Assembly (NCBI RefSeq): GCF_022045235.1
Contig: NW_027266286.1
Location: 55,242,001-55,306,000, forward strand
Origin: Haliotis cracherodii
Taxonomy: Eukaryota
DNA length: 64,000 nt
Direction: 5' to 3'
How positions within the stretch are numbered: the first letter of the stretch is position 1; each line of letters begins with the position of its first letter. A program made the translations under genes and the position numbers. Positions 3,755 through 48,700 of this stretch are shown one piece after another. Under the pieces are notes generated by a model. That model ran no database searches and was not told where the DNA came from. It was given only the letters and a program-made list of their open reading frames with translations.

Positions 3755-4094
3755 GAAGTCCTTTCCATGGATCCTGAATGGTATGAAGACTCTGATGTCG
3801 TCCTATCAGAGGATGAAGAAGACGAAGATGATGATGAAACGGACGACAGTTATCTATTAGCAGAAAGTCAGCCTGAAAGTGGAGAAGTGTTGAGTGGCAA
3901 AAGAGTCCCTGTGAAGGATGATGAAACCTCCGTCTGTGAGACACGCAGTGACTCTGACAGTGGAGAAGCTGCAGTGTCTTCAGACATTGTTCATACTCCC
4001 CCCCGGAATCTGCCAACAGATCAACTATGTGAAGGTCGCAGGTTGTTGACAGATGGTGGTAATGCTCTTGATGGAAGAGTCTTGCACCCTGGAA
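3755..4094 (+). CDS. Gene A first coding exon, acidic and probably disordered (MDPEWYEDSDVVLSEDEEDEDDDE...)
   Basis: catcag| acceptor at 3754, ATG at 3767, strong donor a|gtaagt at 4095, phase 1, coding-like composition. Confidence 0.65.
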
Positions 4095-7000
4095 GTAAGT
4101 ACTCACAATGTCGCCAGGACCATAAAACTTAATAAAATCACAATGTATTTGTGGCACCGTATGTATAACAAAAATCTTTAAACAGGTTATCTCAAAATTA
4201 GAGATAAGGGGCTTTTATTGGAATTTGGTGAAAGAGTCGAAAGATGATCAATTTTATGGTTTCTGCTGACAGCTTGAAATAATACAAAAGTAAAGTCTGT
4301 GCGTATTTTACAGAATTTAATTGCTCGTAATTAAGGGTGCATATAACACATGAGTGCGTATTATACACGAATAAATGTACACGAATTGTGTACATTAATC
4401 AGTTGGAAGGGTGCTAATTTGGATTGTTCACAAGCAAATATATTGGCAAATATGGCCGTGGGCGTTTATTAGAGCGGGGTGCTTATTACGTCGAATACGG
4501 TATTCGGAAATGTGATTCATAATACAGAAAATCACTTCAGTTCTTGACAAGATGGTCATGTGGCAGTTGTATCTTAATTGTAAATAATATACCAATCAAG
4601 TAATCACTGTTTTTTTTACTTCCTCAAGAAGAGGATTGTGGTGTGCAGATTCCAGAGGACACTGTCTTTTACACCAGGGGAAGGAATTCTCACAATGTTT
4701 TCAATCTCAGTGGAAATACTGGCTGCGTGCATGTTACATTCAAGGAAAACAAAGAACAGCAAAAAAAATTTGAAATTATAATCCACGTTGGTATTTCTTA
4801 AGATCAGGTACATCCAAATTGTTATTAAGGTTCGAATAGGCTATTGCACATCATTTTGTTTTCAAAATGGAATAAACTTTGGCACATGTGTAGTTAGTAG
4901 TGGGGTATGATCTATGTGTTCTGTTTTTGCGATATTTTACGTTTTGAAATATACACAAAGAAAAAGGTTAAGCACATCCCTATTTCTGAACCATGACAAA
5001 TGGCAAAAATCATGGCATAGGATGACTGACCACAGGAGCTGGGCAATACCAGTGTTATCGGATAGAACAATCATTTGACAACAAATAAAGAAGATATTGG
5101 TGAGTTGTGATTGAAATTTACTGTCAAAAACATCATGGTAACACAGGTACTGTTTTTATACCTCAGACAGTATGTCAAAAAAGTATGGAGCTTCAAGTAA
5201 ACGAGTTACGTTTGATGTTTCATGTGAAAATGTTCCTTAAAGTTTCTACTTGACATGACACGTGAAACAGATCAGTAACGGGTATAACCGCCACGTGCCC
5301 GGATGACGCATTCCACCCTGCGTCTCATTCCTTCAGTCAGATGTAGGATCTGTTGATGGGTCAACAACAAAAACATTGTAGATATCGCTTCAATGAAATT
5401 GCATTACAATACTTTGCAGACCACTGTGACGTCATTGGTTACCATGACGACACAATCAAGTGACATCACAAATGGCTCTGCTACTGAAGCTTATTACTGT
5501 CTACAAACTAAAAAAGTTGGAAGAATTATGTTTGATGATAAATAATATCTCACCCTCTTGTCTTTTGATAACAAATATATCAACACTCATTGGTAAAAGT
5601 GGGACAACTACTCGGCAAGCTTCAGAGTTTTTCCACACGAGTTGATATGTTTGATATCAAAAGACGAGGTGAGATTCTCTATTCGTTGACATGTATACTG
5701 TTGACATATCCAGGTGAACTTCCGTGCCGTAGCATTATTGTTAACATATCTATTTGATTTTATATATTTCTAAATCCTGTATTTGCCTTGTGAATTGTGT
5801 GTGTTTCTTCCTTTCGTTTGTGAGTGAGGGAACTCATCACAATCTGTGTACGAATCTGAGTATGTTAATGTTTGATACATGATTTCTTACTTATTATTCA
5901 GGAGGGGACACATCTGTATTGGACTCAGGTGAGTTGTGTTCATATGATACTATTATTATCCCCCGCCACGAAGTGGAAGGGGCATATAGGAATGGGTGCC
6001 GTCCGTCCGTCCTTCCGTCGGCCGTCCTTCCGTCCGTCCGTCAGTCCGTCCGTCACATTTCGTTTCCTGAGCAGATTTTGAAAACCGTACTATATTTCTT
6101 CATCAAACTTGGCACATAGATAGGTCTAGTGGTGAACTGGTGCCTTTTGATAGTTTGGGATTTTAAAAAAATGATTTTTTGAGCTTCCATGGCAACGACT
6201 TTGATTTAGACTGAAAATGGCGGTATTCCTCGTTTCCGGAGCAGATCATAAAAAACGTACTATATTTCTTCATCAAACTTGGCACATAGATAGGTCTAGT
6301 GGTGAACTGGTGCCTTTTGAAAGTTTGGGATTTTAAAAAAAGTTATATTTTTAGTTTCCATGGCAACGACTTTGATTTAGACTGAAAATGGCGGTAGTCC
6401 TCGTTTCCGGAGCAGATCTTGAAAACCATACCATATTTCTTCACCAAACTTGGCACATAGATAGGTCTAGTGGTGAACTGGTGCCTTTTGATAGTTTGGG
6501 ATTTAAAAAAAAGTTATTTTTCAAGTTTCCATGGCAACGACTTTGATTTAGACTGAAAATGGCGGTATTCCTCGTTTCCGGAGCAGATCTTGAAAACCGT
6601 ACTATATTTCTTCACCAAACTTGGCACATAGATAGATCTAGTGGTGAACTGGTTCCTTTTGATAGTTTGGGATTTAAAAAAATAATATTTTTCAAGTTTC
6701 TATGGCAACGACTTCGATTTAGACTGAAAATGGCGGTAGTCCTCGTTTCCGGAGCAGATCTTGAAAACCGTACCATATTTCTTCACCAAACTTGGCACAT
6801 AGATAGATCTAGTGGTGAACTGGTTCCTTTTGATAGTTTGGGATTTAAAAAAAAGTTATTTTTCAAGTTTCCATGGCAACGACTTTGATTTAGACTGAAA
6901 ATGGCGGTAGTCCTCGTTTCCGGAGCAGATCTTGAAAACCGTACCATTTTTCTTTACCAAACTTGGCACATAATGTCATCTCACAGTATTGAATACATTT

Positions 7001-10000: not shown

Positions 10001-13000
10001 GCAAAATTGATATACTGTGGTTGACAAAATACACTGTGTACACTATATTGTTTATTATGTGGGAATTAAATACTAAACCTAACAAGAGTCTCTCAAATGG
10101 TTTGCATGGTTGATAAACATGGTGAAGTGTTTTATGGTCTTAACAGGAGAATATTAAAATTATGAATAGACAGTTGCAGTATATATGTTTTAGCTATATT
10201 TTTCTTGAGGAGGAAATAATATTTTTCAGATCCTAATAAAATTATCTTCTTCATAATTACTTTTGCAATGTATACACCACCTTTATTCTCTATATATGTA
10301 TGTTGTAATAACAACCAGTCTCAACCTTAGACGTCACGCCGAAGACCCGGGTTCGATTCCCGACATGGGTACAATGTGTGAAGCCCATTTCTGCTGTCCC
10401 CCGCCGTGATATTGCTGGAATATTGCTAAAAGCGGCGTAAAACCAAACTCACTCACTCACTCACTCAACCTTAGATGGCATGAACTGCTACGAAATCTTG
10501 CTAGTACCAGTCTGAATTGAGAAAGAATGATTTATTTTGAGTAACCTTACCTCATTGCATCTTCACTTTTCTCTACCTTTGAACTCGTCACGACATGGCT
10601 GAAATATTGCTGATTTGACGTAAAGCATAAACTGACTCACTCACTCTACTTTTGAAAACTTTGACAGTAATGACCCAAAGACGAAATTCGAAATTCTTTC
10701 AAATGTATTTTTGGGAAACAAAACACTTCCTTTTTTTAGTAACAAACTACATTTGTACATGGATTCATAACTTGAATCTTCCAATATACCTAACTGTAAC
10801 AAGTATTTTTTTTCAGGCTGATAAAAAGTTCCCAGTACATAAATAACTCGTTTTCAAACAAACGCTTTTACCCACAGTCGCAAAAAAGAATAATCTTCAT
10901 TTGAAATTAGTCATACGACTAACCAATGAAATATGATCATGGTATCTTTGTATACTGTTATAGCGTTTCAATTACAGACATTTTACATGTTTTTGTTCAG
11001 TTACACAAAGTGGTTACACTGAAAACAAAGCTGTTGTCGGAACAAACAATGGAACTATCAATAAGATTTGAGCTAGTTGTTGTAAGTTTTATCAACTGTC
11101 AAATACGAACACTGTGTACAATGAAACTCCTTTGTTATTTTTTGTATGTAGCCTTCATGCAGAAATGTGAAAATCCTGACTACTTGTGTTACGTGTACAT
11201 TAAAGCCTGTGTACATCACGGAGTTTGACAAGCATCCAATGATGCGAATCCGCCCGATGAATTAATCTTATTCCCAAATTAACCTGATCGCCGTGATCTA
11301 ACTGAAATGTGTTCAAAGCGGCATTTAACCCACACTGATTCCCTCACGAACAGAGTGTCAAATCTCTTTTCATTACTTAAATAAAGCGACAAAACCCCTT
11401 CGATATCCAATAGAAACCTCTGCACAAAGCAGAGTCAATTTTAACGATTACAACTATATCATGAGCATCTGTTTTTCAATCACTCTATAATAGTAATGAT
11501 ACCAGGTGTTCGCGAAAAGGTGAGCGTAGTAAGGAAGTATCAATTAGTTATTCTATTATATATCATGTCTCGTGGATTGAAATTGTGGCAATGCCTGTAT
11601 ATATCCTCCAGTTACCTCCTTGGTGCAAGTCTTTCAAGTGTTGTTCTCTGAGGGTCTTCTTATGTTATCATTACTATCAACGGTTTTACGATTCGTTTCA
11701 GAAAATTCGATTTTGAGCAGCCTTCAGGGTGAGATGTTTTTCTCTGGTCAGTTATGCTCTCTCACAAAAATGTATAGTGATTTTCTTTGTGATTGGTAAG
11801 ATTGTTTTGTAAAAGGGCTAAATTAACGTCCAATTTCAAAAGGGCCAAAACACCACATTATTCAGGAAGGGACAAATCTGTGTTGGACTCAGTCATAGGT
11901 GTTTTCATATGATGCTATTATTAATAATAACAGGTGGGGGTTACGGGTAAGGATAAATGTCCCCAGCAAAATATTCCTGGCGTGAAAGATGACTAAATGG
12001 ATGGAATGGTCAAGCTCGGTGACATTGTTTATTGCATGTCATCGTTCCCAAATTGTGAGGACCAGTCCTCATGCTGTCAGATACTGAATTGTCTGGTCCA
12101 CACTTAATTCTTTACACTATAGCTGGGACATTGCTGAACATGTCGTTAAAGAACAAATAAATCATACCAAGACATATTAGATAACATATTATACATATAT
12201 TGTATTTTTGTAATTCGTCTATTCATTTAATTTGATTTTTTTTCAGACCAGAGCAAACTCAGACTTTTCGATATTGACGAGCGAGTACTTGTTAAAACTG
12301 ATGCAATCAGTCAGTTCGAAAATCACTTGTCGCATCATGGAATGATTATAATCACTGGACGATCCGGTGAAGGGAAGACAATGGCATCTCTGTTGCTGTT
12401 GAAGGTTTTTTTATCGAAACATTCCCACACACCATTGATATTGACGGACCCTCGTCAGTGGGATCTTATTCCTGCATCTCGTAAATCGAAACAGAAGTAT
12501 GTTGTACTCATTGATGACATATTTGGCCAGTCAAATCTGGTACAGGATCTTCAGACCAGGTGGGAGCAAAAGTTTCCAATGATGATGCCCCTGGTAAAAG
12601 CAAGAATTGTGTCTCTTATTATAGTTTCCAGAACAAATATCTTTCAATATAGTAAATCCAATCTCACAATGTTCGAGAACTCTTCAGCAAGAGAATTTAC
12701 CTTGGGGTTTTCGAAAGAAGAGAAGCTTCTTGTTTTAGAAAATCATATCAAAACCTTTGCAAAAGACCTGAAGCTTACTGCAGAACAGAAGATTCGGATC
12801 ATACAAACAGACCAACTGTTAGGATTTCCACAATGTTGCTATCTGTACGCCACCAGCAAACCGAAACATTCTGAAAGTGTTGCTTTCTTTACTGAACCAA
12901 TGAGGTACTTGGCAGACTCTATAAAGAACATGCGTGACAAAGACCCTCTGTCATACCTAGTGTTATTACTCGTGATGTTTCATGACGGGGTATTGCCAAA

Positions 13001-16000
13001 AAAAGTTTTTCAACCTTTTGAAGGGGAACCTGTAGATATACCCTTTCTAGATAATATTGTTCAAATATGCTCAGTGAAACAAAAACCAACCCTTTGCATC
13101 ATGAAAGACGTAGCAGACAGTTTGTTGACAGTATACCTATCCTTGAATGAAAGTAACTATACATTCCTACATCGCTGCATTTATGATGTCATATTCCTTG
13201 AATTTTGCAAAGGCAGTTTGTCAAAGGGAATTCAAATGTGTGCCATAAGTACTCTGCTTGAATATGTCAGAACAAAACCTGCAGCTGACAAAAGGTATGG
13301 TAGTGATTGGATTGTAATAGTTTCAGAAGATATGTTTGGTATTCTTGCTGAGAGGATTACAAAAGAACTTTTGTCTGACAACTGTCAGTTGGTAACTGCT
13401 CATCCATGTTTGAAGGATACGGACTTCATTTCCTTTCTGACAAAATCCTGGGATGTGAAAAAAAAAGCACAAATAGCAACACACCCAGTAGAGAAACAGG
13501 TAGTCAGTGCAACCATATACTTCACGGAAGAAGCAGTGGACGTCCTGACCAACATATTCACCCAGGACACCCAGGAGGCCTTACCATTGCAGCAAACCAC
13601 TTTGAAGTTATTTGAATATGAATCCATCACTTCATATCTCACTATGGCTGGAGCATATAATTTGGCACTTCATTTGCTCAATTCACAAAAGGCAACGGAC
13701 GCTGACCATTATGAAAAGACAAGAAATAGTATGTTTGTCTGTTCATTTTATAAATCAAACTCTGAAAAGGTGGCACTTCTATTTGAACAAGATGCTGAGC
13801 TAACAACAGAATGCGTTATAGCGGCATGTGCAGCTGAGAAAGCACATGAAGTACTCTTTGATATGGCTCTTGGTTGCATGGAGGAAACTGATTCAGACAT
13901 GGACACCCTGCAAAATATGTTATCACTGTGCATAGAACGCCAACAATTCCACTTTTTCAAGGGATTAATCAGTATGATATTGGAACCAAAAAGAATGCAA
14001 CGGACATTTAGACAAATACTGTTGCAATTTCATAATGCAATTCCTACATTTCTTCTAACAACAAATGGACAAGAAGAACAGTTCAATTTAAAGGATATAT
14101 TGACAGTGCTGAATGATGTGGAAATGGGAAATGTTACCGATGACTGTGTTCTCCTATCTGCAGGATGTAATGATACCTTAGCTTTGAAGGCTGCTATTCA
14201 CCATGGAGGTAACGCCCACTGCACAAATAAATGTCAGCAGACACCTGTTCATCTTGCAGCAAAGTATGGATCTGAGCAAACTTTGGATTTCCTTTATGGG
14301 CTTTGTGGAAATGCCTCTCCTGGAGATATATATGGCTTTACACCTCTGCATTATGCGGCACTATCCTCGTTTCATAGTTCCGAAAAAGTGTTCACTGCAC
14401 TGAAGTGGAAGTCAAAGATAACTGACAAAACGCTAACTGGAAAGACAGCCCTGACACTGGCTGTAGAAGAAGAAAATATTGGCTCTATAGACAGGTTAAT
14501 ACTGTCAATCAAAGAACAGGGTTTACATTGCGAATATCCCATGCACGTTGCCGTGTCTGCTCTGATCTGTACACTACAAAGATGTCATACCACCAGAGAT
14601 GTTGCCTTAGTGCAACGCAACAAAGCTAAGATGATAGCAGTGTTGCAGCACCATGGATATTCGTTACTGGATGTAAATAATAAAAACACAACCTCTCTAC
14701 AAATGATTGTGAAATCAGGCACCGTACATTTATTGACATATTTACTAAAATTTTCCAATGTAAACAAATGTGTTATTCGAGATACGGAAGTACATGTTAC
14801 CATTGACAGTTTGAAGTCCCTTATTTACTGTGCTGCTGAACATGGTCATCTGAACGTTTTCACATATTTCTTTGAAAACATGTCATTCCAAACTGATAAC
14901 CACGTAGAGGACTATGTGAAGTCCGCTCTGTGTAATGCAGCTGAGAAAGGTCACCTCAACATTGTCCAGTTCTTTGTGGAGAAGGGTGAGGATATGAATA
15001 TAAAATATGAAAGGGGTGTGTCGCCTCTGTGCATTGCAGCTAAAAATGGTCATTTGAAGATTGTCAGATATTTTTATCTTAAAGGTGCTGATATGAGTAT
15101 TACGCCAACATATTGGGATCCACTTCTGATCAGTGCAGCTAACAATGGCTACACTGAGATTGTTAAGTGTTTGGTAGAGGAAGATGCTGATGTGGATGTG
15201 ACAGATGAAAATAGACACTCACCCCTGTGCTGTGCTGCTCGAAATGGCCACACTGACATTGTCCAGTACTTGTCAGAGACAGGTGCTGATGTGACTATTA
15301 CAGATGAATATGGGAACTCACATACCTGCATTACAGCTGAAAATAGAGAGAATAAAAGTGAGAAGTCTTTGGGAGAGGAAGATGTTGATGTGAATATCAT
15401 AGATACATATGGGATCGAACCCCTCTGGTGTGCGTTTGGAAATGGTCACATTGGAATTGTTCGATACTTGGTAGAGCATGGTGCCAGTGTGCATAATGCA
15501 GATGCATATGGGAACCCATTCCTGTGTAAGGCAGTTGACAGTGGAAACACTGAGATCGTCAGACTCCTTGTGGATAAAGGTGTTGATGTAAACACACCAG
15601 ATACATTCTGGACATCAGTTTTGCGGAGGGCAGCTGAATGTGGTAACACAGAGATGGTCAGAATCCTTGTGGAGAAAGGTGTTGACGTAAACATAACAGA
15701 CACATGCTGGACATCACTTCTGCAGATTGCAGCTGAACGTGGTGACACTGAGATGGTCAGGGTCCTTGTGGAAAAAGCTGTTGATGTAAATATACCAGAT
15801 ACATTCTGGACATCATTTTTGCAGAGGGAAGCTGAAGGTGGTAACACTGAGATGATCAGACTCCTTGTGGAGAAAGGTGTTGATGTAAACACACCAGATA
15901 CATTCTGGACATCAGTCTTGCGGAAGGCAGCTGAGCTCGTCAGACTCCTTGTTGGGAAAGGTGTTGATGTAAACACGACAGATACATTCTGGACATCAGT

Positions 16001-19000
16001 TTTGTGGAGGGCAGCTGAACGTGGTAACACTGAGATGGTCAGACTCCTTGTGGAGAAAGGTGTTGATGTAAACACGACAGATACATTCTGGACATCAGTT
16101 TTGCAGAGGGAAGCTGAAGGTGGTAACACTGAGATGGTCAGACTCTTGGTGGACAAAGGAGTTGATGTAAATATACCAGATACATTCTGGACATCAGTCT
16201 TGCGGAGGGCAACTGAGATCGTCAGACTCCTTGTGGGGAAAGGTGTTGATGTAAACACGACAGATACATTCTGGACATCAGTTTTGGAGAGGGCAGCTGA
16301 ACGTGGTAACACAGAGATGGTCAGACTCCTTGTGGAGAAAGGTGTTGATATAAATATACCAGATACATTCTGGACATCAGTTCTGCAGAGGGCAGCTGAA
16401 CGTGGTAACACCGAGATGGTCAGACTCCTTGTGGAGAAAGGTGTTGATGTAAACACACCAGATACATTCTGGACATCTGTTTTGGAGGTGAACGCTGAAC
16501 TTGGTAACACTGAGATGGTCAGGCTCCTTGAGGAGAAAAGTGTTGATGTAAATATACCAGATACATTCTGGACATCATGTTTGCAGAGGGCAGCTGAACG
16601 TGGTAACACAGAGATGGTCAGACTCCTTGTGGAGAAAGGTGTTGATGTAAATATACCAGATACATTCTGGACATCAATTTTGTGGAGGGCAGCTGAATGT
16701 GGTAACACAGAGATGGTCAGGCTCCTTGTAGAGAAAGGTGTTGATGTAAATATACCAGATACATTTTGGATATCAATTTTGTGGAGGGCAGCTGAACGTG
16801 GTAACACAGAGATGGTCAGGCTCCTTGTGGAGAAAGGTGTTGATGTAAATATACCAGATACATTTTGGACATCAATTTTGTGGAGGGCAGCTGAACGTGG
16901 TAACACAGAGATGGTCATGCTCCTTGTGGAGAAAGGTATTGATGTAAATATACCAGATACATTTTGGACATCAATTTGGTGGAGGGCAGCTGAACGTGGT
17001 AACACAGAGATGGTCAGGCTCCTTGTGGAGAAAGGTGTTGATGTAAACATAACAGATACATTCTGGACATCATTTTTGCGGAGGGCAGCTAAACGTGGTG
17101 ACACTGAGATGGTCAGAATCCTTGTGGAGAAAGGTGTTGATGTAAATATAGATACATCCTTGACATCAGTTTTGTGGAGGGAAGCTGAACGTGGTAACAC
17201 TGAGGTCGTCAGACTCCTTCTGGAGAATGGTATTGATGTAAACACACCAGATACATTGTGGACATCACTTCTGCAGAGGGCAGCTGAACATGGTGACACA
17301 GAGATGGTCAGACTCCTTGTGGAGAAAGATGTTGATGTAACTATACCAGATACATTCTGGATATCAGTTCTGCAGAGGGCAGCTGAACGTGGTAACACTG
17401 AGATGGTCAGACTCCTTGTGGAGAAAGATGTTGATGGGAATTTACCAGATATATTCTGGACATCATTTTTGCAGAGGGTAGCTGAACGTGGTAACACTGA
17501 GATGGTCAGACTCCTTGTGGAGAAACGTGTTGATGTAAATATACCAGATACATTCTGGACATCAGTTTTGGAGGTTGAAGCTGAAGATGGTAACACTGAG
17601 ATGGTCAGACTCCTTGTGGAGAAAGGTGTTGATGTAAATATACCAGATACATTCTGGACATCAGTTCTGCAGAGGGCAACCGAACGTGCTAACACCGAGA
17701 TGGTCAGACTCCTTGTGGAGAAAGGTGTTGATGTAAATATACCAGATACATTCTGGACATCAGTTCTGCAGAGGGCAACCGAACGTGCTAACACCGAGAT
17801 GGTCAGACTCCTTGTGGAGAAAGGTGATGATGTAAATATACCAGATACATTCTGGACATCAGTTCTGCAGAGGGCAGCTGAACGTGGTAACACAGAGATG
17901 GTCAGACTCCTTGTGGAGAAAGGTGTTGATGTCAACACACCAGATACATTCTGGACATCTGTTTTGGAGGTGAACGCTGAACTTGGTAACTCTGAAATAG
18001 TCAGGTTCCTTGTGGAGAAAGGTGTTGATGTAAATATACCATATACATTCTGGACATCATGTTTGCAGAGGGCAGCTGAACGTGGTAATGCAGAGATGGT
18101 CAGACTCCTTGTAGAGAAAGGTGTTGGTGTAAATATACCATATACATTCTGGACATCATGTTTGCAGAGGGCAGCGGAACGTGGTAATGCAGAGATGTTC
18201 AGACTCCTTGCGGAGTATGGTGTTGATGTAAATATACCAGATATATTCTGGACATCAATTTGGTGGAGGGCAGCTGAACGTGGTAACACTGAGATGGTCA
18301 GGCTCCTTGTGGAGAAAGGTGTTGATGTAAATATACCAGATACATTTTGGACATCAATTTTGTGGAGGGCAGCTGAACGTGGTAACACAGAGATGTTCAG
18401 GCTCTTTGTGGAGAAAGGTGTTGATGTAAACATAACAGATACATTCTGGACATCATTTTTGCGGAGGGCAGCTAAACGTGGTGACACTGAGATGGTCAGA
18501 ATCCTTGTGGAGAAAGGTGTTGATGTAAATATAGATACATCCTTGACATCAGTTTTGTGGAGGGAAGCTGAACGTGGTAACACTGAGGTCGTCAGACTCC
18601 TTCTGGAGAATGGTATTGATGTAAACACACCAGATACATTGTGGACATCACTTCTGCAGAGGGCAGCTGAACGTGGTGACACAGAGATGGTCAGACTCCT
18701 TGTGGAGAAAGATGTTGATGTAAATATACCAGATACATTCTGGACATCAGTTCTGCAGAGGGCAGCTGAACGTGGTATCACAGAGATGGTCAGACTCCTT
18801 GTGGAGAAAGGTGTTGATGTAAATATACCAGATACATTCTGGACATCAGTTTTGGAGGTTGAAGCTGAAGATGGTAACACTGAGATGGTCAGACTCCTTG
18901 TGGAGAAAGGTGTTGATGTAAATATAACAGATACATTCTGGACATCATGTTTGCAGAGGGCAGCTAAATGTGGTAACACAGAGATGGTCAGACTCCTTGT

Positions 19001-20603
19001 AGAGAAAGGTGTTGATGTAAACATAACAGATACATTCTGGACATCATGTTTGGAGGTTGAAGCTGAAGATGGTAACACTGAGATGGTCAGACTCCTTGTG
19101 GAGAAAGGTGTTGATGTAAACATAACAGATACATTCTGGACATCATGTTTGCAGAGGGCAGCTGAATGTGGTAACACAGAGATGGTCAGACTCCTTGTAG
19201 AGAAAGGTGTTGATGTAAACATAACAGATACATTCTGGACATCATGTTTGCAGAGTGCAGCTGAATGTGGTAACACTGAGATGGTCAGACTCCTTGTGGA
19301 GAAAGGTGTTGATGTAAATATAACAGATACATTCTGGACATCATGTTTGCACAGGGCAGCTAAATGTGGTAACACAGAGATGGTCAGACTCCTTGTGGAG
19401 AAAGGTGTTGATGTAAACATAACAGATACATTCTGGACATCATGTTTGCAGAGTGCAGCTGAACGTGGTAACACTGATATGGTCAGGCTCCTTGTGGAGA
19501 AATGTGTTGATGTGAATACACCAGAAACATTCTGGACATCTGTTTTGGAGGTTGAAGCTGAACGTGGTAACACAGAGATGGTCAGACTCTTTGTGGAGAA
19601 AGGTGTTGATGTTAACATAACAGATTCCTTCTGGACATCAGTTCTGCAGAGGGCAGATGAACGTGGTGACACAGAGATGGTCAGACTCCTTGTGGAGAAA
19701 GGTGTTGATGTAAACACACCAGATACATTCTGGACATTAGCTTTGCGGAGGGCAGCCGAATGCTGTAACACTGAGATGGTCAGACTCCTTGTGGAGAAAG
19801 GTGTTGATTTAAATATACCAGATACATTCTGGACATCAGTTCTGCAGAGGGCAGATGCACGTAGTAACACTGAGATGGTCAGACTCCTTGTGGAGAAAGG
19901 TGTTGATGTAAACATAACAGACACATTCTGGACATCAGCTCTGCAGAGGGCAGCTGAATGTGGTAACACTGAGATGGTCAGACTCCTTGTGGAGAAAGGT
20001 GTTGATGTAAACATAACAGATACATTCTGGACATCATCTTTGCAGAGGGCAGCTGAATGTGGTAACACTGAGATGGTCAGACTCCTTGTGGAGAAAGGTG
20101 TTGATGTAAATACAGGTATACATGGGCACACACCTCTTTGCAGTGCATCCGTTAATGGACACATTGATATTGTCCGTTTTCTTGTTGAGATTCGGTATGC
20201 CCTTGTCCTTCTGCGCACTGCAGCAGAAAATGACAACATTGAGATAGTCAAGTATCTTTTAGACAATGGGGTTTATCTTTACATAATGAAAACATATGGT
20301 AATTTCCCTCTTTGCACAGAAGTTGCAAATCTACACCTTCAGATTCTTCAGTATCTCGCTAAAAGATGTGTTAATGTGAATATGAAAGATAGTTGCTGGA
20401 ATATACTTGTGTGCACTGTAGTTGCCAATGGACACTCTGAGGTTTTCAAGTATGTTGTTGAGAGTGGTGCTGATGTTAATATGACAGATAGCCATGGCAA
20501 ATCACTAATGTGCATTGCAGCTGAAAAAGGTCATATTGAGATTGTCAAGTATCTTCATCAAAAAGGTGTTCCTGTGAATATCACAAAGGACAATTTCAGA
20601 TAA
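3767..20603 (+). CDS. NLR-like nSTAND3 NTPase-ankyrin repeat protein (gene A). Spliced model: 3767-4094, 4629-4790, 5902-5928, 9832-9927, 11702-11728, 12247-20603
   Basis: The terminal exon follows tttcag| at 12246 and is in frame with the 2758-aa ORF. Walker A GRSGEGKT (12357-12380), Walker B VVLIDDIFG, and IIVSR, GFPQCC, FFTEP and YTFLH motifs are typical of nSTAND3, followed by >55 ankyrin repeats. All upstream exons have AG/GT ends and phase-1 junctions and splice without stops. The terminal exon is near certain; the 5' exon chain is inferred. Confidence 0.85.
4629..4790 (+). CDS. Gene A putative 162-nt exon (KEDCGVQIPEDTVFYTRGRNSHNVFNLSGNTGCVHVTFKENKEQQKKFEIIIHV)
   Basis: Polypyrimidine tract with caag| acceptor, open frame in phase 1-1, weaker donor g|gtattt. 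Confidence 0.5.
5902..5928 (+). CDS. Gene A 27-nt microexon (GDTSVLDS)
   Basis: ttattcag|...cag|gtgagt, phase 1-1, frame-preserving. Confidence 0.6.
5953..7472 (+). mobile_element. DINE-1/HINE-like non-autonomous Helentron-type element with an internal 171-bp tandem array
   Basis: Subterminal inverted repeat atcccccgcca (5958) / tggcgggggat (7441), (GTCC)n microsatellite at 6000-6053, ~5.5 repeats of 171 bp (6060-6972). The element is absent from the duplicate copy of its flanks near 11920. Confidence 0.75.
7700..9748 (+). mobile_element. Decayed CR1/L2-group LINE, 3' part
   Basis: RT remnants (LLFADN at ~8187, KYLGI at ~8399, KFCKLILNIS...ILGECRRFPL) and an aataaa(ctgt)n tail at 9728-9748. 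Confidence 0.8.
8428..8665 (+). mobile_element. SINE family 2 (long central domain) inserted in the LINE
   Basis: cgggtggtcaggctcgctgacttggttg core, (AAAC)n tail, flanked by the direct repeat ttttcatgcaga (~8417 and ~8667). Confidence 0.85.
9832..9927 (+). CDS. Gene A 96-nt exon with RHIM/amyloid-like motif (STSVGVIGPFNSIVDRNITMGINYGSVVQSG)
   Basis: tttacag|...ggcg|gtaagt, phase 1-1. A paralogous exon with the same donor lies at 58516-58602 (-). Confidence 0.75.
10330..10466 (+). mobile_element. 5'-truncated SINE family 1
   Basis: Family-1 body with (ACTC)n tail, flanked by ctcaaccttaga repeats. Absent from the paralogous gene B intron near 58125. Confidence 0.9.
11702..11728 (+). CDS. Gene A 27-nt microexon (ENSILSSLQ)
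   Basis: tttcag|...cagg|gtgaga, phase 1-1. Length and both splice sites are conserved in the paralog at 51424-51450 (-). Confidence 0.75.
11866..11892 (+). pseudogene. Degenerate duplicate of the 5902-5928 microexon
   Basis: ttattcag|gaagggacaaatctgtgttggactca... matches 5894-5928, but the gtgag donor is replaced (cagtcatagg). Confidence 0.6.
15581..20115 (+). repeat. Coding tandem array of ~46 ankyrin units of 99 bp (VDVNIPDTFWTSVLQRAAERGNTEMVRLLVEKG)
   Basis: 99-bp period is directly visible. Two units lack 5 aa and two lack 1 aa. Confidence 0.97.
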
Positions 20604-21019
20604 CTTGGCCACGTCTACATTGTCAGTTATCTGACTGAAAAACAGACAAGTCACATCGGACACCAAAAACAGTTATATCTTTGAAATAGAATCGAAGGTG
20701 GTGTGAAAATGCAAAGAACATCGGTCAAAATATTTTGATGAAACTATATACCCAGGACAGAGCAATGTAAACATTTAACATCACATCAGCATTATTTCAG
20801 CCATATGGCGACAACACATGGGATCCAAAGGCACTTTCAAACAGTCAGTAGCGAGTGTGCCCACCTTGTGTTTGTTTCAGGCCCTCATTGGGGCAGTACA
20901 CGTTAAAGATGTTGAAGGCCTGGAAAATGGCATTCCATATCTGAGGAAGGATAAGCTACAGTTTCGGCAACGTTATTGTCATCCCAGACATGATCAAAAG
21001 CTCCGATTGTACTTAAACC

Positions 21020-21292: not shown

Positions 21293-21569
21293 TACTTAAT
21301 ACTGCCATAAAATATACTTTTTAGGTACGTCATAATGATCTGACGTAATGGTGCTGTTCAAATTATCATCATTTCTGCACTAAACACACCTTAGAGTGGT
21401 TTTCGTTAATAAACACATCCTCTGAATATAACCCTTTATATCCCTAATTAGGTAATTATAGTAAGAGAATATCTTTGTTGCAAATACATTATTATTATTG
21501 CCACATTTATTGCACCTGATAATATCTTTATGTGTCATTCATTACTTTAATTTCCTCTTATGCTGTATG

Positions 21570-24500
21570 TAGTTGATAGTAAATATGTGTGTACATTATT
21601 AAAACAAAACATAGCATAATGTTGATGATAAATATGTGTGTACATTATAAAAACAAACATAGTATATGGTTCATAGTAAATATGTGTGTACATTATAAAA
21701 ACAAAACATAGCATACAGTTCATAGTAAATATGTCTGTACATTATTTCAGCAAAACATAGTATATAGTTCATAGTAAATTTGTATGTACATTATTAAAAC
21801 AAAAAATAGTATACAGTTTATATTAAATATGCGTGTACATTATAAATACAAAACATAGGATGTAGTTCACAGTAAATATGTGTGTACATTATTAAAACAA
21901 AACATAGTTTACAGTTCATAATATATATGCGTGTACATTATCAAAACAAAACATAGCATACAGTTCATAGTAATTATGTGTGTACTTTATTAAAACACAA
22001 TTTAGTATATAGTTCAAAGTAAATATGTGTGTACATTATTAAAACAAAGCGTAAACTATAGTTAATAGTAAATAAGTGTGTACATTATTAAAACAAAGCA
22101 TGATATATAGTTCATAGTAAATATGTCTGTACATTATTAAAACAAAACATGGTATACAGTTCATTGTAATATGTGTGTACATTATAAAAAACAAAACATA
22201 GTATATACTTCATATTACATATGTGTGTACATTATTAAAGCAAAACATGGTATATAGTTCATAGTAAATATATGTGTACAATATCAAAACAAAACATAAT
22301 ATACAGTTCATAGTAAATATGTGTGTACATTCTTAAAGAAAAACATAGTAAACAGTTCATAGTAAATATGTATGTACATTATTAAAACGAAACATAGCAT
22401 ACAGTTCATAGTAAATATGTCTGTACATTATTTAAGCAAAACATTGTATACAGTTCATAGTAAATATGTATGTTCATTATTAAAACAAAACATGGTATAC
22501 AGTTCATTGTAAATATGTGTGTACAGTATAAAAACAAGACATAGTATATAGTCCATTGTAAAAATTGGTGTACATTATTAAAGCAAAACATGGTATATAG
22601 TTCATAGTAAATATGTGTGTACATTATGAAAACAAAACATAGCATAGTTCATAATTAATATATGTGTACATTATTAAAACAAAAAATAGTATACAGTTTA
22701 TATTAAATATGCGTGTACATTATAAATACAAAACATAGGATGTAGTTCACAGTAAATATGTGTGTACATTATTAAAACAAAACATAGTTTACAGTTCATA
22801 ATATATATGCGTGTACATTATCAAAACAAAACATAGCATACAGTTCATAGTAATTATTTGTGTACTTTATTAAAACACAATTTAGTATATAGTTCAAAGT
22901 AAATATGTGTGTACATTATTAAAACAAAGCATAAACTATAGTTAATAGTAAATAAGTGTGTACATTATTAAAACAAAGCATGATATATAGTTCATAGTAA
23001 ATATGTGTGTACATTATTAAAACAAAGCATGGTATATAGTCCATAGTAAATATGTGTGTTCATTATTAAAACAAAGCATGGTATATAGTTCATACTAAAT
23101 ATGTGTGTACATTATTAAAACAAAACACAGCATATAGTTTATAGTAAATATATGTGTACAGTATCAAAACAAAGCATGGCATATAGTTCATAGTAATTAT
23201 GTGTATACATTATTAAAACTAAACATGGTACATAGTTCATAGTAAATATGTTTGTTCATTATCAAAACAAAACATAGTATATAGTCCATAATATATATGT
23301 GTTTACATTCGTAAAACAGAACATGGCATGTTGTTCAAAGGTAATATGTGTGTGCCTTATTAAAACAAAACATGGTTTATAGTTAACAGAAATATATGTG
23401 TATATTAGTAAAACAAAACACAGCATATAGTCCATAGTAAATATGTGTGTACATAATTAAAACAGAACATAGCATCTTATTCATAGTTAATATGTGTGTA
23501 CATTATCAAAACAAAATATAGTATATAGTTCATAGTAAATATGTGTTGACATTATTAAAACAAAGCATGGTACGTACTTCATAGTGAATATGTGTGTACA
23601 TTATCAAAACAAAATATCGTATATAGCTCATAGTTAATATGTGTGTACATTATTAAAACAAAACATGGTATATAGTTCATACTAAATATCTGTACATTTT
23701 AAAAACAGAACATAGCATCTTGTTCATAGTTGATATGTGTGGACATTATCAAAAAATGTATAGTATATAGTTCATAGTAAATATGTTTGTTCATTATTAA
23801 AACAAAAATAGTATACTGTTCATAATTAATATGTATGTACATTATTAAACCCAAACATAGTATATAGTTCATAGTAAACATGTATGAAAATTATTAAAAC
23901 AAAACATTGTATACAGTTTATATTAAATATGTGTGTACGTTATAAAAACAAACCATAGTATATATCTCATAGTAAATATGTGTATACATTATGAAAACAA
24001 AACATAGTATACAGTTCATAGTAAATATATCTGGATACTCTTAAAACAAAACAAAGCATATAGTTCATAGTAAATATTTGTGTACATTATTAAAACAAAA
24101 CATAGTAAACGGTTCATAGTAAAATATGTGTACATTATTAAGACAAAACATAATATACAGTTTATATTAAATATGTGTGTACGTTATAAAAACAAAGCAT
24201 AGTAAATATTTCATAGTAAATATGTGTGTACATTATGAAAAAAAAACATACCATAGAGTTTATAGTAAATATGTCTTAACATTATTTAAGCAAAACATAG
24301 TATACAGTTCATTGTAAATATGTGTGTACACTATTAAAACAAAACATGACATTTAGTTCATAGTAAATATGTGTGTACAGTAATAAAACAAAACTATAGC
24401 ATATAGTCCATAGTAAATATGTGTGTACATTATTAAAACCAAATATAGTATATAGTTCAAAGTAAATATGTGTGTGCATTATTAAAACAAAACATAGTAT

Positions 24501-25028
24501 ACAGTTCATAGTAAATATGTCTGTACATTATAAAAACAAAACATAGTATATAGTTCATGGTAAATATGTGTGTTCATTATTAAAACAAAACATAGCATAT
24601 AGTTCATAGTAAATATGTGTGTACATTATTAAATAAAAACATAGTATGCAGTTCATAGTAAAATGGATGTACATTATTAAAACAAAACGTAATATACAGT
24701 TTCTATTAAATATGTATGTACGTTATATAAACAAAGCATAGTTAATAATTCATAGTAGAAATTTGTGTACATTATTAAAACAAAACATAGTATACAGTTC
24801 ATAGTAAATATGTCTGTACATTATAAAAACAAAACATAGTATGTGTGTACTTTATCCAAACAAAATATATTATATAGCTCATAGTAAATATGTGTGTACA
24901 TTATTAAAACAAAACATAGTATGTAGTTCATAGTAAACACGTGTGTACATTGTTCAAACAAAACATGGTACATAGTTCATAGAAAATATGTGTGTACATT
25001 ATTAAAACAAAACAGGATGTAGTTCATA
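21570..25028. repeat. Satellite array, 49-bp unit (atagtaaatatgtgtgtacattattaaaacaaaacatagtatatagttc), ~70 copies
   Basis: Directly visible tandem array with an 880-bp internal block duplication (21841 vs 22721). Confidence 0.97.
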
Positions 25029-45798: not shown

Positions 45799-48700
45799 TT
45801 AATTGTCTGTACTCATGTCAGAAAATCTTCCGATAAGTTCAATCAGTTCACGATCACTGGCACCAAGTTCATCAACATTGAAAAACCTCACGAGTTTCTC
45901 TGCAACAACCTGATGACCTCCACCACTAGCTGCATGTAAGCATGTACCTCCATAGTCATCCTTGCACAGGACATCAGCGCCACATGACAGCAAATGATCA
46001 ACAATATCTGTGTATCCACGGTAACAGGCTATCATTAATGGGGTGGCATTTTTCGGTCCACGCTTATTGATGTAAGATGGTTCATCACCTCCAACAGATG
46101 TAAGAAATTTCACAATGTTGTACCAACCATTGTTGCAGGCCACATATAGACAACCGCCGCCAAGATTGATATCTGCTCCCTTTTTTACTAGTTCCTCTAC
46201 AATGTCCATGTGCCCTTGTTGACAGGCAACCATGATTGGAGTCCAGCCATCTTTAGTGAGAGAATCGATGTTGTGATCAACGCCAAGACAAAGTTGAACC
46301 AAATGGAAAATACCAGATTTTGCTGCAACGTGCAGACTTGTTCTTCTTTTGTTGTCCACCATCTGTATGTCAGCGCCATTGTTCATCAAGAATGTTACCA
46401 TATCAGTATGACTGTTCTGAATAGCATACATTAAGGGTGTTTTCAATAGTGAATTTACACAATTCACAGTGGCTCCTGTTTGTAGAAGCCACTCAGCTGT
46501 TGGAACGTGCCCTTTCATTGCTGCCAAGTGTAGACATGAATTGTTCTCTTGATCGACGGCATCTAAAACAGCATGTCTACGTTTTAGTTCCTTTGCTGTT
46601 TCCAACTTCCCATGCCTGCAAGCACACATTAATGGCGTTCTTCTGAACTTACTACCAACATCTTCAATGTTCATTCCATGATCAAGAAGTATCTTTACAA
46701 TATTGGTTTCTCCCTTCATACATGCAAGATGTAGACATTTGTTTGTAACAGAGACAGAATCTGAGGTGTGTGCTCCATTCTCTAAGAGCAACTTCACGAT
46801 ATCTGAAGCGTAAATCAAAGGTGTTCTTCCATATTCACCACCTTGGTTCAAATCCATAGATTGTCTGAGCAGCAATTCAGCAACGTCAAGGCACCCTCCT
46901 CTGCACGTGAGATGAAGACAGTTGTCACTCTCTTCATCTAATAGTCCTGGAGCTGCTCCCCTGTCAAGTAGCATCTGGGCCAAATCAGCGTGTCCCCGAT
47001 AGCAAGCATGCATGAGAGCTGTCATACCATTTCCCCCAAGAACATCAATTGCAGTGTTGACAGGGTCAAGCAGTATACGCACACATTCTGTAAACCCATT
47101 GGCAGCAGCCACGTGGATTAACATATCTCTGTTGTCACCATATTCTCGAGGGCAGTCTTTGTCTGAGGGCACTGCAGGAGAGGCAATACTTTTTGCTGTA
47201 GAAAGAGATTGAAGATACGGTCTGGTTTTATCTTTGTTATGCAGGATATCCCCGACAGTTGTAGTGGCTATTTTGTCAAACCAAGAGGCAGATTGACCAA
47301 CGAGTTCTTTTAAGTAGCTCAAGTGCAAGTAGCTCAAGTGCCCATGCATGCAGCACCCAAGATAACATTCAAGGATGTCTGATTCACATAGCTGCATTCG
47401 TGGAATGTATTTGCAAAATGCACCTGTGTCCAAATATGATGACCAGAATAAGAATCCTCGATCCTTGTCACGTTGAAACGAAATATTATCTGCTGGAAAG
47501 TAGGAGAAGAGTTTGTCAACCAGGTCCTCAAAGGTAAAACATTGATGTGATAATGAGAGGGACAAATTACCATTAGTAATTTCTCTTCCAAGTCGTCTCA
47601 CAAGATTCTCCGTTAAATCATCTTCAATATTAATAAGGAACGTATTCATATGACCATCTTTTGAGATGCCTGTATTCTTGGTTTCTGAAATCCAAATTCT
47701 GTCAACTATGAACTTTAGACTGCAGTTCTCTAAGGCGACAACAGGGTGTAAATCAATCACAACGCATGCCACAACATCATGAATAGCTGGGTGACTAAAT
47801 TTTGCGCAATTGTTCTTTAATAGCACAATCAGTGTATCTTTTTCGTTTCTTGCAGATTTCCTGATTTCAGCAGGATTGTTAGCGTCTGGCATGATTTCCC
47901 CCATCTGTGATATCTTTTTGTCCAATCCGGAATCCCTTCGCCGTTGAGGATCTAAGAGATCATTTAAGTGTAGACCACCTTCATTGAGTATCATAAGCAG
48001 GAGAACTGCAGCCCTGTACCTTTCTTCATAGCGTGAAAAGATAACAGCTACTACATCATGCAAGTAGATCCACGGTTTCTTAAAAAAATCCAAGGCATTT
48101 CTTTCTAGAGAAGAATTCTTCACAAACAGTTGGCATATGTAAGGAAATCCCAGTGTCGTGTACTCCAGTCTTGCAACTGCTAACATTTCATCATGCGTTA
48201 GATGGAATTGCGATCCTTCCAAATGTTTTTTTAAAATCTGTTCTTTTTCAGTATCACCAAGAGGAGTAGATGTAGTCAGATTTATGACAGGTGACAGCAA
48301 TGAATTTTGGTATTTAATTACCATTTGAGAGACACTATTCCAGACGTTTGTCCGACTGGTCATAATGACCTTCAAAGGCATCACGTCCTTTTCCATTTCC
48401 AAAAGTTGGAAATGATGTTCTAAATATTCAAACATAGCGTCACAACTCTTCACAACATCGGCTGATGATGCAAAAGTACCAAACACATTATCACAAACCA
48501 GTAACGTTTGAGTGGGTGTGTTGTACTTAAAGTTCTCCCATTTATCTACACAAATCACGCGGTGTCCCTCTGCTCTGTATTTTCCTGAGATGTAGCGGGC
48601 CATTGTTGTTTTTCCTGATCCAGGCGAACCACAAATAAATACATGGTCCTTGGTTTGCAGGGCATTCCAGACTTCACGATAAGCCCCAGTTTCTATAAAT

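Follow-up and report, generated by a model that had tools for sequence, protein, structure and literature searches.

A STAND-ankyrin gene of the black abalone with 46 near-identical repeat units and five hypervariable codons per unit

A gene in the genome of the black abalone Haliotis cracherodii raises the question of how, and to what end, an animal protein carries a long series of repeats that are nearly identical in their scaffold but strongly diverse at a few closely spaced positions. It resides in a stretch of 64,000 nucleotides (assembly GCF_022045235.1, contig NW_027266286.1, positions 55,242,001-55,306,000 of the forward strand), which we refer to as the window and whose positions serve as coordinates throughout, and it encodes an NTPase domain of the nSTAND3 type followed by an array of 46 ankyrin-derived units. 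Arrays termed repeats of high internal conservation (HIC) have been described in NOD-like receptors (NLRs) of fungi, where they are formed by ankyrin, TPR or WD repeats and are accompanied by polymorphism in repeat number and by positive selection (Dyrka et al., 2014, PMC4986451). Our analysis suggests that the abalone array is probably the germline-diversified sensor domain of an NLR-like receptor of the nSTAND3 clade of STAND proteins, which evolves under a regime of the HIC type.

The coding region is dominated by a single giant exon, which extends as an open frame from a splice acceptor to the stop codon (Table 1), in accordance with the initial annotation, where the array had been placed in one exon of 8.36 kb. 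Near its start, the match to the nSTAND3 profile PF20720 covers positions 2-154 of 155 (residues 18-171 of the frame starting at 12240), and the translation contains, besides the Walker A motif GRSGEGKT, the Walker B-like sequence YVVLIDDIFG, both motifs of the NTPase thus being intact. The families Ank_2 and Ank match across 15402-20600 with 1109.5 bits (cut-off 27.3) and 867 bits, respectively, and the assignment of the units to the ankyrin family follows from scores above the threshold of the family model and from the period of 99 nucleotides or 33 residues. At an E-value of 0.01 or better, the Pfam matches comprise nSTAND3 and ankyrin families only, with no NACHT or NB-ARC domain and leucine-rich repeats among them, and the winged-helix domain PF25521 of TANC proteins is likewise absent. 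The succession of a STAND-type NTPase and ankyrin repeats agrees with the interpretation in the initial annotation, which drew a comparison with fungal NLRs; the protein is NLR-like in its architecture and no member of the NLRs in the strict sense. An N-terminal tail of about 150 residues is encoded by small upstream exons, as indicated by tblastn with P0001, the annotated neighbouring paralog (listed by NCBI as uncharacterized protein of Haliotis cracherodii). These exons were located only, and the giant exon or parts of it served as the input of every protein search. The mini-exon encoding GGDTSVLDS is found in two copies, either of which could splice to the giant exon.

Within the array, Tandem Repeats Finder detects a period of 99 nucleotides (also 198 and 297) over 15530-20112 with 87% matches, and if the translation is divided at each D-T-F-W-T-S anchor, 46 units result, close to the span of 15581-20115 where about 46 near-identical ankyrin repeats had been noted. 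Most units (41) are 33 residues long, whereas units 4 and 7 contain 28 and units 16, 30 and the last one 32 residues, and all four length changes within units (two of 15 and two of 3 nucleotides) are in frame. In nucleotides 44 of the 46 units are distinct, in protein 43. Their identity to the consensus averages 0.87, with a minimum of 0.73, which as a Psim-like measure of our own, not calculated with T-REKS, places the array among HIC repeats, for which a threshold of T-REKS Psim 0.7-0.85 was defined in fungi. Pairwise nucleotide identity among units averages 87.7% and ranges from 75 to 100%, and the scaffold contains common synonymous variants, such as ACT (22 units) and ACA (17) at codon 17, AAT (26) and AAC (19) at codon 31, TTG (32) and CTG (12) at codon 8 and others at codon 21. 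The previous description of a scaffold that is almost invariant in DNA thus holds for the protein, where it is near-invariant, but not for the nucleotide sequence.

The differences between units are concentrated in a short segment. Amino acid entropy per column is highest at positions 7 (2.24), 9 (1.88), 14 (1.69), 10 (1.10) and 11 (1.06), followed by positions 27, 32 and 33 (0.93-0.94), and does not exceed 0.73 at any remaining column; the probability that five random columns out of 33 would lie within eight residues is 0.0039. All of the alternating residues that had been listed for these sites are found, with I and K at position 10, V at 11 and A at 13 occurring in addition. The five codons 7, 9, 10, 11 and 14 account for 46.5% of the nonsynonymous and 7.3% of the synonymous pairwise diversity, compared with 53.5% and 92.7% in the other 28 codons. 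Expressed as nonsynonymous and synonymous diversity per site (pN and pS), this corresponds to 0.353/0.072 at the five codons and 0.072/0.167 elsewhere, and if the pN of the five codons is related to the array-wide pS of 0.153, the ratio, denoted as pN/pS(all), is 2.31. Variation is thus neither uniform nor dominated by synonymous changes, either of which would have counted against the initial interpretation.

Since the set of five codons was picked from the data, its pairwise pN/pS is partly circular, and since the units also share ancestry, we have added counts on trees. In a minimum spanning tree, the codon changes comprise 41 nonsynonymous and 3 synonymous events at the five codons compared to 93 and 57 elsewhere (Fisher odds ratio 8.4, p 3e-5). 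Counted in nucleotide steps and scaled to the array-wide synonymous rate, omega amounts to 1.69 at the five codons (Poisson P 2e-4) and 0.49 elsewhere in a tree built on all codons, and to 5.2 and 0.47 in a tree built without the five codons, the two estimates bracketing the true value. Many changes at the variable codons require two or three nucleotide steps, as for example GTT/TGT, CAG/TGG, AGG/GTT and GCA/AAC. A hand count of extra states per codon, with 22 nonsynonymous and 3 synonymous ones at the five codons and 55 and 24 elsewhere, displays a weak contrast because the scaffold holds many rare variants; the signal lies in the frequency and recurrence of changes and not in the number of states. 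The scaffold is under purifying selection. With respect to the few diversifying codons on a binding face that characterize HIC repeats, we find a strong focus and a nonsynonymous excess in pairwise and tree-based counts, at positions that are assigned to helix 1 from an alignment and from the secondary structure of a model.

The location of these positions in the repeat was deduced from the comparison with solved structures, where phmmer aligns the units without gaps to the repeats of designed ankyrin repeat proteins (DARPins) and of ankyrin-1 with E-values of 1e-64 to 1e-61. In the resulting register, Trp 4 falls on the canonical Gly 4 and S6-V7-L8-Q9 on the T-P-L-H motif. The units thus deviate from canonical ankyrin motifs, as the consensus contains W4 and SVLQ in place of G4 and TPLH at positions 6-9, and the β-hairpin between repeats is absent from a moderately confident model. 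In this single-sequence AlphaFold2 prediction of eight units, with a predicted local distance difference test (pLDDT) score of 77.3, positions 1-13/14 form one helix and positions 17-25 a second one without a hairpin, whereas in eight canonical units of the family member L015, predicted by the same method (pLDDT 92.0), helix 1 extends over positions 7-14 and helix 2 over positions 17-25. The invariant DTFWTS would therefore extend helix 1 in the model, and from their spacing (i, i+3/4, i+7) we infer that residues 7, 10, 11 and 14 may share one helical face. Turn positions normally constitute half of the ankyrin binding face. Of the two parts of the binding face named in the initial annotation, helix 1 and the turn, the former carries the variable sites both by the alignment to solved ankyrins and in the model, whereas the turn positions are invariant (DTFWTS). 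In a fold search, the model superimposes poorly on both ANK and TPR/PPR solenoids, with template modelling (TM) scores of 0.29-0.57, and we derive no fold from it. Among the sequence matches is the ankyrin domain of a 'Pfs, NACHT and Ankyrin domain protein' (PDB 6ne1_B), which could be used as modelling template, and also the designed repeat-protein binders 6ndz, 6ne2 and 6ne4.

How the array has changed can be followed from the relationship between its units. All four gametes are present in 120 of the 210 pairs formed by 21 informative sites, even at a spacing of 1-3 nucleotides, a pattern that fits shuffling or conversion between units as it had been proposed from the outset. The 46 units contain 30 different six-residue signatures, and the nearest relatives of units are often far apart. 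A decay of identity with distance along the array was considered and dismissed, the curve being nearly flat from 0.887 at lag 1 to a baseline of about 0.872, except for a bump at lag 14, which is caused by a block duplication that links units 15-19 with 29-33 (Table 1). Units 9, 10 and 21 pair with 24, 25 and 34.

A second view on this turnover is provided by the neighbouring paralog. Located about 59 kb further downstream, with a protein identity of 86%, it carries 12 units of the same type compared to 46 in the window gene, while the non-repeat flanks of the two genes are 92.7% and 94.2% identical in DNA. Strict concerted evolution, where units would be more alike within a gene than between paralogs, was rejected as their identity is 87.7% within one gene and 86.6% between the two. 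Concerted evolution in the sense of homogenisation within a gene, to which the initial annotation referred, is thus weak, since units of different paralogs are as alike as those within a gene and less alike than the flanks. Nevertheless, 56 of the 58 units (46 and 12) find their nearest relative in their own gene. Strong homogenisation is less in keeping with these properties than a birth-and-death process combined with local duplication and short exchanges. The unit type is private to the two genes, as in 135 scored genome matches to four units, the 23 with at least 61% identity are all located in the two frames and the next best shows 43%.

The gene is part of a large family. At least 58 genome matches to its NTPase part were found (from 599 first-look candidates), which mostly reside in giant open frames of 1000-2500 residues. 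We have examined 40 frames, the window gene and 39 others, where an array was defined as at least five units with at least 60% identity at the repeat lag. By this definition 14 of the 40 contain arrays, each with its own consensus, and the remainder contains diverged repeats; a regular expression for the P-loop matches 27 of the 40 open reading frames. In the members L015, L017 and L019, the most variable columns in the canonical register are 2, 3, 5, 13, 14 and 33 (in L017 1-5 and 13). These six positions are the classical ones of ankyrin binding and are reported to be those that Binz and colleagues randomised in their DARPin libraries of 2003. At this set of six, pN/pS(all) is 2.75 in L015, 2.71 in L017 and 2.08 in L019 compared to 1.25 in L018 and 0.83 in L020. 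As a hypervariable set chosen a priori for the window gene it was discarded, with a value of only 0.89. At codons 7, 9, 10, 11 and 14, the neighbouring paralog displays the same tendency as the window gene with a ratio of 1.45.

In another assembly, the Haliotis protein P0002 shares 824 of 853 N-terminal residues (96.6%) with L019 (G000:C34:54679000-54685000), but the two arrays, of 24 units each, lack colinearity. Between these orthologs, the mixture of two alternating types of hairpin cassette (AEDNNQV and ARGRFGV) differs. L014 (G000:C78:29416500-29426000) and L016 (G000:C23:26189800-26197200) are built from near-identical units that each comprise a double ankyrin repeat of about 68-75 residues with an inserted variable loop (as in ...LHYLIHNESYHYGRNECLDHETYQLFLD...), which is a different way to build a variable surface in the same family. 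The search for protein homologues returned three proteins, and the product of the window gene was not among them.

With these results at hand, we return to the reading introduced at the beginning, a sensor domain of probable HIC type. The array would form a long α-solenoid built from one private, ankyrin-derived unit type, in which five residues on helix 1 of each unit are kept diverse, so that the 46 units would provide a long patchwork surface for recognition. Point changes at the five codons would generate the diversity, which would then be disseminated and brought into new combinations when single units or blocks of several units are duplicated, when units are deleted and when short segments are exchanged among them. 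In this respect the regime of evolution would equal that of the HIC repeats of fungal NLRs. By analogy to other STAND proteins, the binding of a ligand to the repeats might release the NTPase for nucleotide-dependent oligomerisation, and signalling might proceed via the N-terminal tail. We infer a role in recognition, an immune or non-self function, this mechanism of activation and a diversity that is selected rather than tolerated. The difference between 46 and 12 units despite highly similar flanks and the lack of colinearity between L019 and P0002 indicate a turnover that we count in favour of this reading, as we do the intact frame of 8.36 kb and the in-frame nature of the length changes. 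Somatic reshuffling finds no support.

Several observations weigh against this interpretation. In the N-terminal tail, for which no domain search was made, no effector domain is recognised, and the neighbours of the N-terminal 817 residues in the ESM Atlas include clusters named ANKRD50-like and TANC2 (scores 0.90-0.91), which are scaffold proteins and not immune receptors. The units of the two neighbouring genes resemble each other almost as closely as those within one. Moreover, an omega above 1 depends on the genealogy, with a conservative value of only 1.69, and recombination between units can inflate the counts. Of the 18 nonsynonymous changes on young tree edges (up to 4% nucleotide difference), 6 fall on the five codons, a weak excess (P 0.04) from which it follows that much of the diversity is old, and the number of independent events is lowered by the linkage of the variable sites into cassettes (EVE-ED, EVN-EL, WRA-ER and others). 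Finally, the contigs that indicate transcription, described below, originate from other species, with an identity of about 93-95%, and from runs whose RNA label is the guess of a tool.

Part of these points would be accommodated if the variation were neutral, with five exposed and unconstrained positions and old subtypes that were amplified by block duplication, perhaps in a STAND-ankyrin protein that, like ANKRD50 and TANC, has a structural or scaffolding role. We consider this explanation unlikely. Although the conservative omega and the weak excess on the youngest edges are in its favour, relaxed constraint predicts an omega of about 1, compared with the 1.7-5.2 that we find (P 2e-4), and does not account for a pN at the five codons that is more than twice the array-wide pS. 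A block duplication of about 13 units is present and would amplify subtypes, but the synonymous variants that were carried along show no comparable diversity at the five codons. Similarly, the recurrence of linked cassettes (VEVEED, VEVNEL, FRRAKR, IWRAER) is faced by the large number of signatures and the pervasive four-gamete pairs, which amount to many independent combinations, and the look-alikes named ANKRD50-like or TANC2 by the absence of PF25521 from the Pfam matches at the threshold given above. In addition, the excess recurs in paralogs of other unit types, there at the canonical binding positions.

As a very unlikely alternative, the number and order of the units, or part of the array such as the block shared by units 15-19 and 29-33, could have resulted from the mis-assembly of a shorter array or from the merging of neighbouring paralogs. 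The four runs inspected contain short contigs only, none of them spanning the array, 62 of the 210 X1 contigs fit two places of the window, and at a distance of 1383 nucleotides, two adjacent units have partners that match them at 100%, as might be expected from such an artefact. Conversely, the high number of distinct units and the frame that remains intact over 4.5 kb argue against collapse or artificial duplication, the arms of the block differ in their outer units, and the neighbouring paralog has its own array with its own diagnostic variants. Each of the four independent runs yields contigs with units of the array type (28-30 of 30 bins), the depth of contigs providing no copy number, and the size of the contig (76.8 Mb in an assembly of 80 contigs) suggests that long-read data were used. 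Contig ends within the array that continue loosely into the C-terminal cap are uninformative about shorter alleles, since they are accounted for if the last unit, of this gene or of the neighbouring paralog, maps to several places. In front of the array, one contig each of X1 and of X15, the latter from a related species, skips exactly 99 nucleotides, equivalent to one ankyrin unit, at 15057-15157, which may reflect an allele or paralog with one unit fewer.

Evidence for expression comes from RNA-like contigs of two related species, which cover 12255-15609. These stop matching at 12245/12249 and continue with unlike letters; the DNA contig X2 runs on into intron-like letters. Upstream of 12245, the unmatched part of the RNA-like contig X15 codes for the mini-exon peptide of P0001. 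The pattern supports use of the acceptor and transcription of the gene, or of its closest relative, in those related species. A recent expansion in a disused and decaying gene, which would be open only owing to its youth, is hardly credible: there is no H. cracherodii RNA run among the listed runs, two units carry 15-nucleotide deletions in the turn between helices and the scaffold contains many rare nonsynonymous variants, yet a synonymous diversity of 0.15-0.19 between units implies that the array is not young while 8.36 kb remain without stop or frameshift, the scaffold evolves with an omega of 0.4-0.5, and RNA-like contigs cover the orthologous or paralogous exon spliced at its acceptor.

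Table 1. Features of the window gene, with positions in the window and the data on which each assignment is based.
Feature	Position	Strand	Basis
Probable first coding exon (MDPEWYED..., acidic, low complexity)	3767..4094, end approximate at GTAAGT donor	+	tblastn with first 185 residues of P0001, 67% identity; list of open reading frames
Probable second coding exon, N/G/V-rich with NVFNLSGNTG motif	4628..4753	+	tblastn with P0001 residues 102-142, 83% identity
Candidate mini-exon GGDTSVLDS	5901..5927	+	tblastn with P0001, 9/9 identical
Second, diverged copy of the mini-exon	11865-11897		tblastn with P0001, 8/11 residues
Splice acceptor AG behind T-rich tract	12245..12246	+	sequence; giant exon begins at 12247, phase 1
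Giant coding exon: NTPase, helical linker, ankyrin domain	12247..20606, 8360 nt including stop	+	stop-free open frame
nSTAND3 P-loop NTPase domain	12291..12752	+	Pfam PF20720, E 1.1e-22, 80.9 bits, cut-off 27.2
Walker A GRSGEGKT	12357-12380	+	read in translation
Divergent ankyrin repeats of low internal conservation before the array	14784..15599	+	Pfam Ank/Ank_2, residues 849-1027 of the 12240 frame; translation
Array of 46 near-identical ankyrin-derived units, consensus DTFWTSVLQRAAERGNTEMVRLLVEKGVDVNIP	15600..20114	+	Tandem Repeats Finder, translation, entropy
Unit 4, 28 residues, in-frame 15-nt deletion in the turn between helix 1 and helix 2	15897..15980	+	
Unit 7, deletion similar to that of unit 4 and nearest relative of unit 4 (96.2%)	16179-16262	+	
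Units 15-19, one arm of multi-unit block duplication	16956..17447	+	nearest-neighbour table, lag-14 bump
Units 29-33, partner arm	18339-18830	+	unit identities to 15-19: 97.0, 100, 100, 98.0, 92.9%
C-terminal divergent ankyrin repeats (GIHGHTPLC...)	20115..20603	+	translation; 94.2% nt identity to neighbouring paralog
Stop codon of giant exon	20604-20606	+	open frame to 20603

Besides the features in Table 1, the window contains a second member of the family at 45802-48603 on the reverse strand, with a frame of 934 residues that includes ankyrin repeats and matches nSTAND3 in part (profile positions 33-154, E 1.9e-6), the P-loop part being probably located on another exon or lost. An open frame of 1606 residues runs antisense to the array (15446-20266, reverse strand); most likely it results from the lack of a stop in one antisense frame of the repeat unit and does not represent a gene. 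Less than 1 kb past the stop codon of the window gene starts an AT-rich satellite with a period of 49 bp, which extends over 21565-25028 in about 67 copies with 81% matches and a GC content of about 0.23-0.27.

Arrays of the HIC type are the best-understood route to rapidly acquired new specificities in fungal NLRs, whereas in animals they are known from database surveys only. One such survey, which employed SMART and T-REKS, reports HIC NLRs also in animals, plants and bacteria and counts nSTAND3 among their ATPases (Ament-Velasquez and Saupe, 2026, PMC13449251); the string 'mollus' does not occur in its main text. HIC repeats were estimated to constitute 0.8% of metazoan repeat proteins (PMC4986451), and lineage-specific expansions of STAND, death-fold and ankyrin architectures were described in marine invertebrates (Kaur et al., 2021, PMC8195603). 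In the literature searched, neither the abalone family nor any molluscan STAND protein with an array of near-identical ankyrin repeats was found to be described. The locus offers a concrete animal case, with its 46 units, five hypervariable codons, a neighbour of 12 units and at least 14 array genes in 40 frames, and makes it testable whether an invertebrate diversifies intracellular receptors by reshuffling of repeats. As black abalone is endangered and has been hit by infectious disease, a polymorphic receptor family would also have practical relevance. That the variable surface has moved away from the hairpin, to a helix 1 that is extended in the model, can be regarded as a natural experiment in the design of ankyrin binders.

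In a wider and tentative scenario, for which we see a lesser chance, abalone and perhaps other molluscs would possess an animal version of the fungal HIC-NLR system, consisting of a large nSTAND3 family whose ankyrin arrays are continually rebuilt in the germline by duplication, deletion and exchange of units, with individuals carrying different alleles for the recognition of pathogens or non-self. The gene pair described here would then represent a hairpin-less ankyrin derivative with an invariant aromatic DTFWTS extension and a variable stripe on a 14-residue inner helix, a recognition geometry that, if true, is undescribed for natural or designed ankyrin proteins.

The closest resemblance is found in the HIC-ankyrin NLRs of fungi, where, as in the abalone gene, a STAND NTPase precedes a long array of near-identical ankyrin units of 33 residues, a few hypervariable codons per unit with nonsynonymous excess are embedded in a conserved scaffold, and the number of units varies between close relatives. 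In both cases arrays are confined to part of the family, 14 of 40 frames in abalone and 15 of 41 NACHT genes in Podospora (PMC13449251). There are also differences, as the abalone host is an animal (a gastropod), the NTPase belongs to the nSTAND3 clade instead of NACHT, and no N-terminal death or effector domain is recognised in a protein whose tail was not searched for domains. The largest fungal case quoted comprises 21 units compared to 46 in abalone. In fungi, the selected sites are located on the concave face, on inner helices and the β-hairpin or loop (PMC4986451), whereas the hairpin segment is invariant in abalone. Polymorphism in repeat number and a role in allorecognition are established for fungal NLRs and putative for the abalone gene. 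The HET-E, HET-D and HET-R (HNWD) proteins of Podospora share the shuffling of repeats within and between genes and the small number of diversifying positions per repeat (PMC4986451). They are built from WD40 β-propeller blades instead of α-solenoid ankyrin units, and exchange between paralogs is documented for them, whereas in abalone the closest relative of a unit is nearly always located in the same gene, and no more than two genes share the unit type.

Among designed proteins, DARPins equally line up a consensus scaffold head to tail with few variable surface positions, and DARPin constructs and ankyrin-1 are the best matches in the PDB. Unlike in DARPin libraries, of positions 2, 3, 5, 13, 14 and 33 only 14 and 33 vary in the window gene, with 2, 3 and 5 fixed as T, F and T; W replaces G4, SVLQ replaces TPLH, and the hairpin-less model superimposes on DARPins with TM scores of 0.35-0.57. 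In vertebrates, ANKRD50 and TANC1-2 likewise combine an NTPase and subsequent ankyrin repeats in an animal protein, a resemblance that is found in language-model features only, without the PF25521 domain. Whereas these proteins are single-copy scaffolds with diverged repeats, the abalone gene is one of at least 58 copies that form a lineage-specific expansion, in which near-identical arrays occur. HIC NLRs in animals having already been reported, the abalone case joins a known kind, as a variant that is distinguished by an invariant aromatic hairpin segment and a variable stripe on helix 1.

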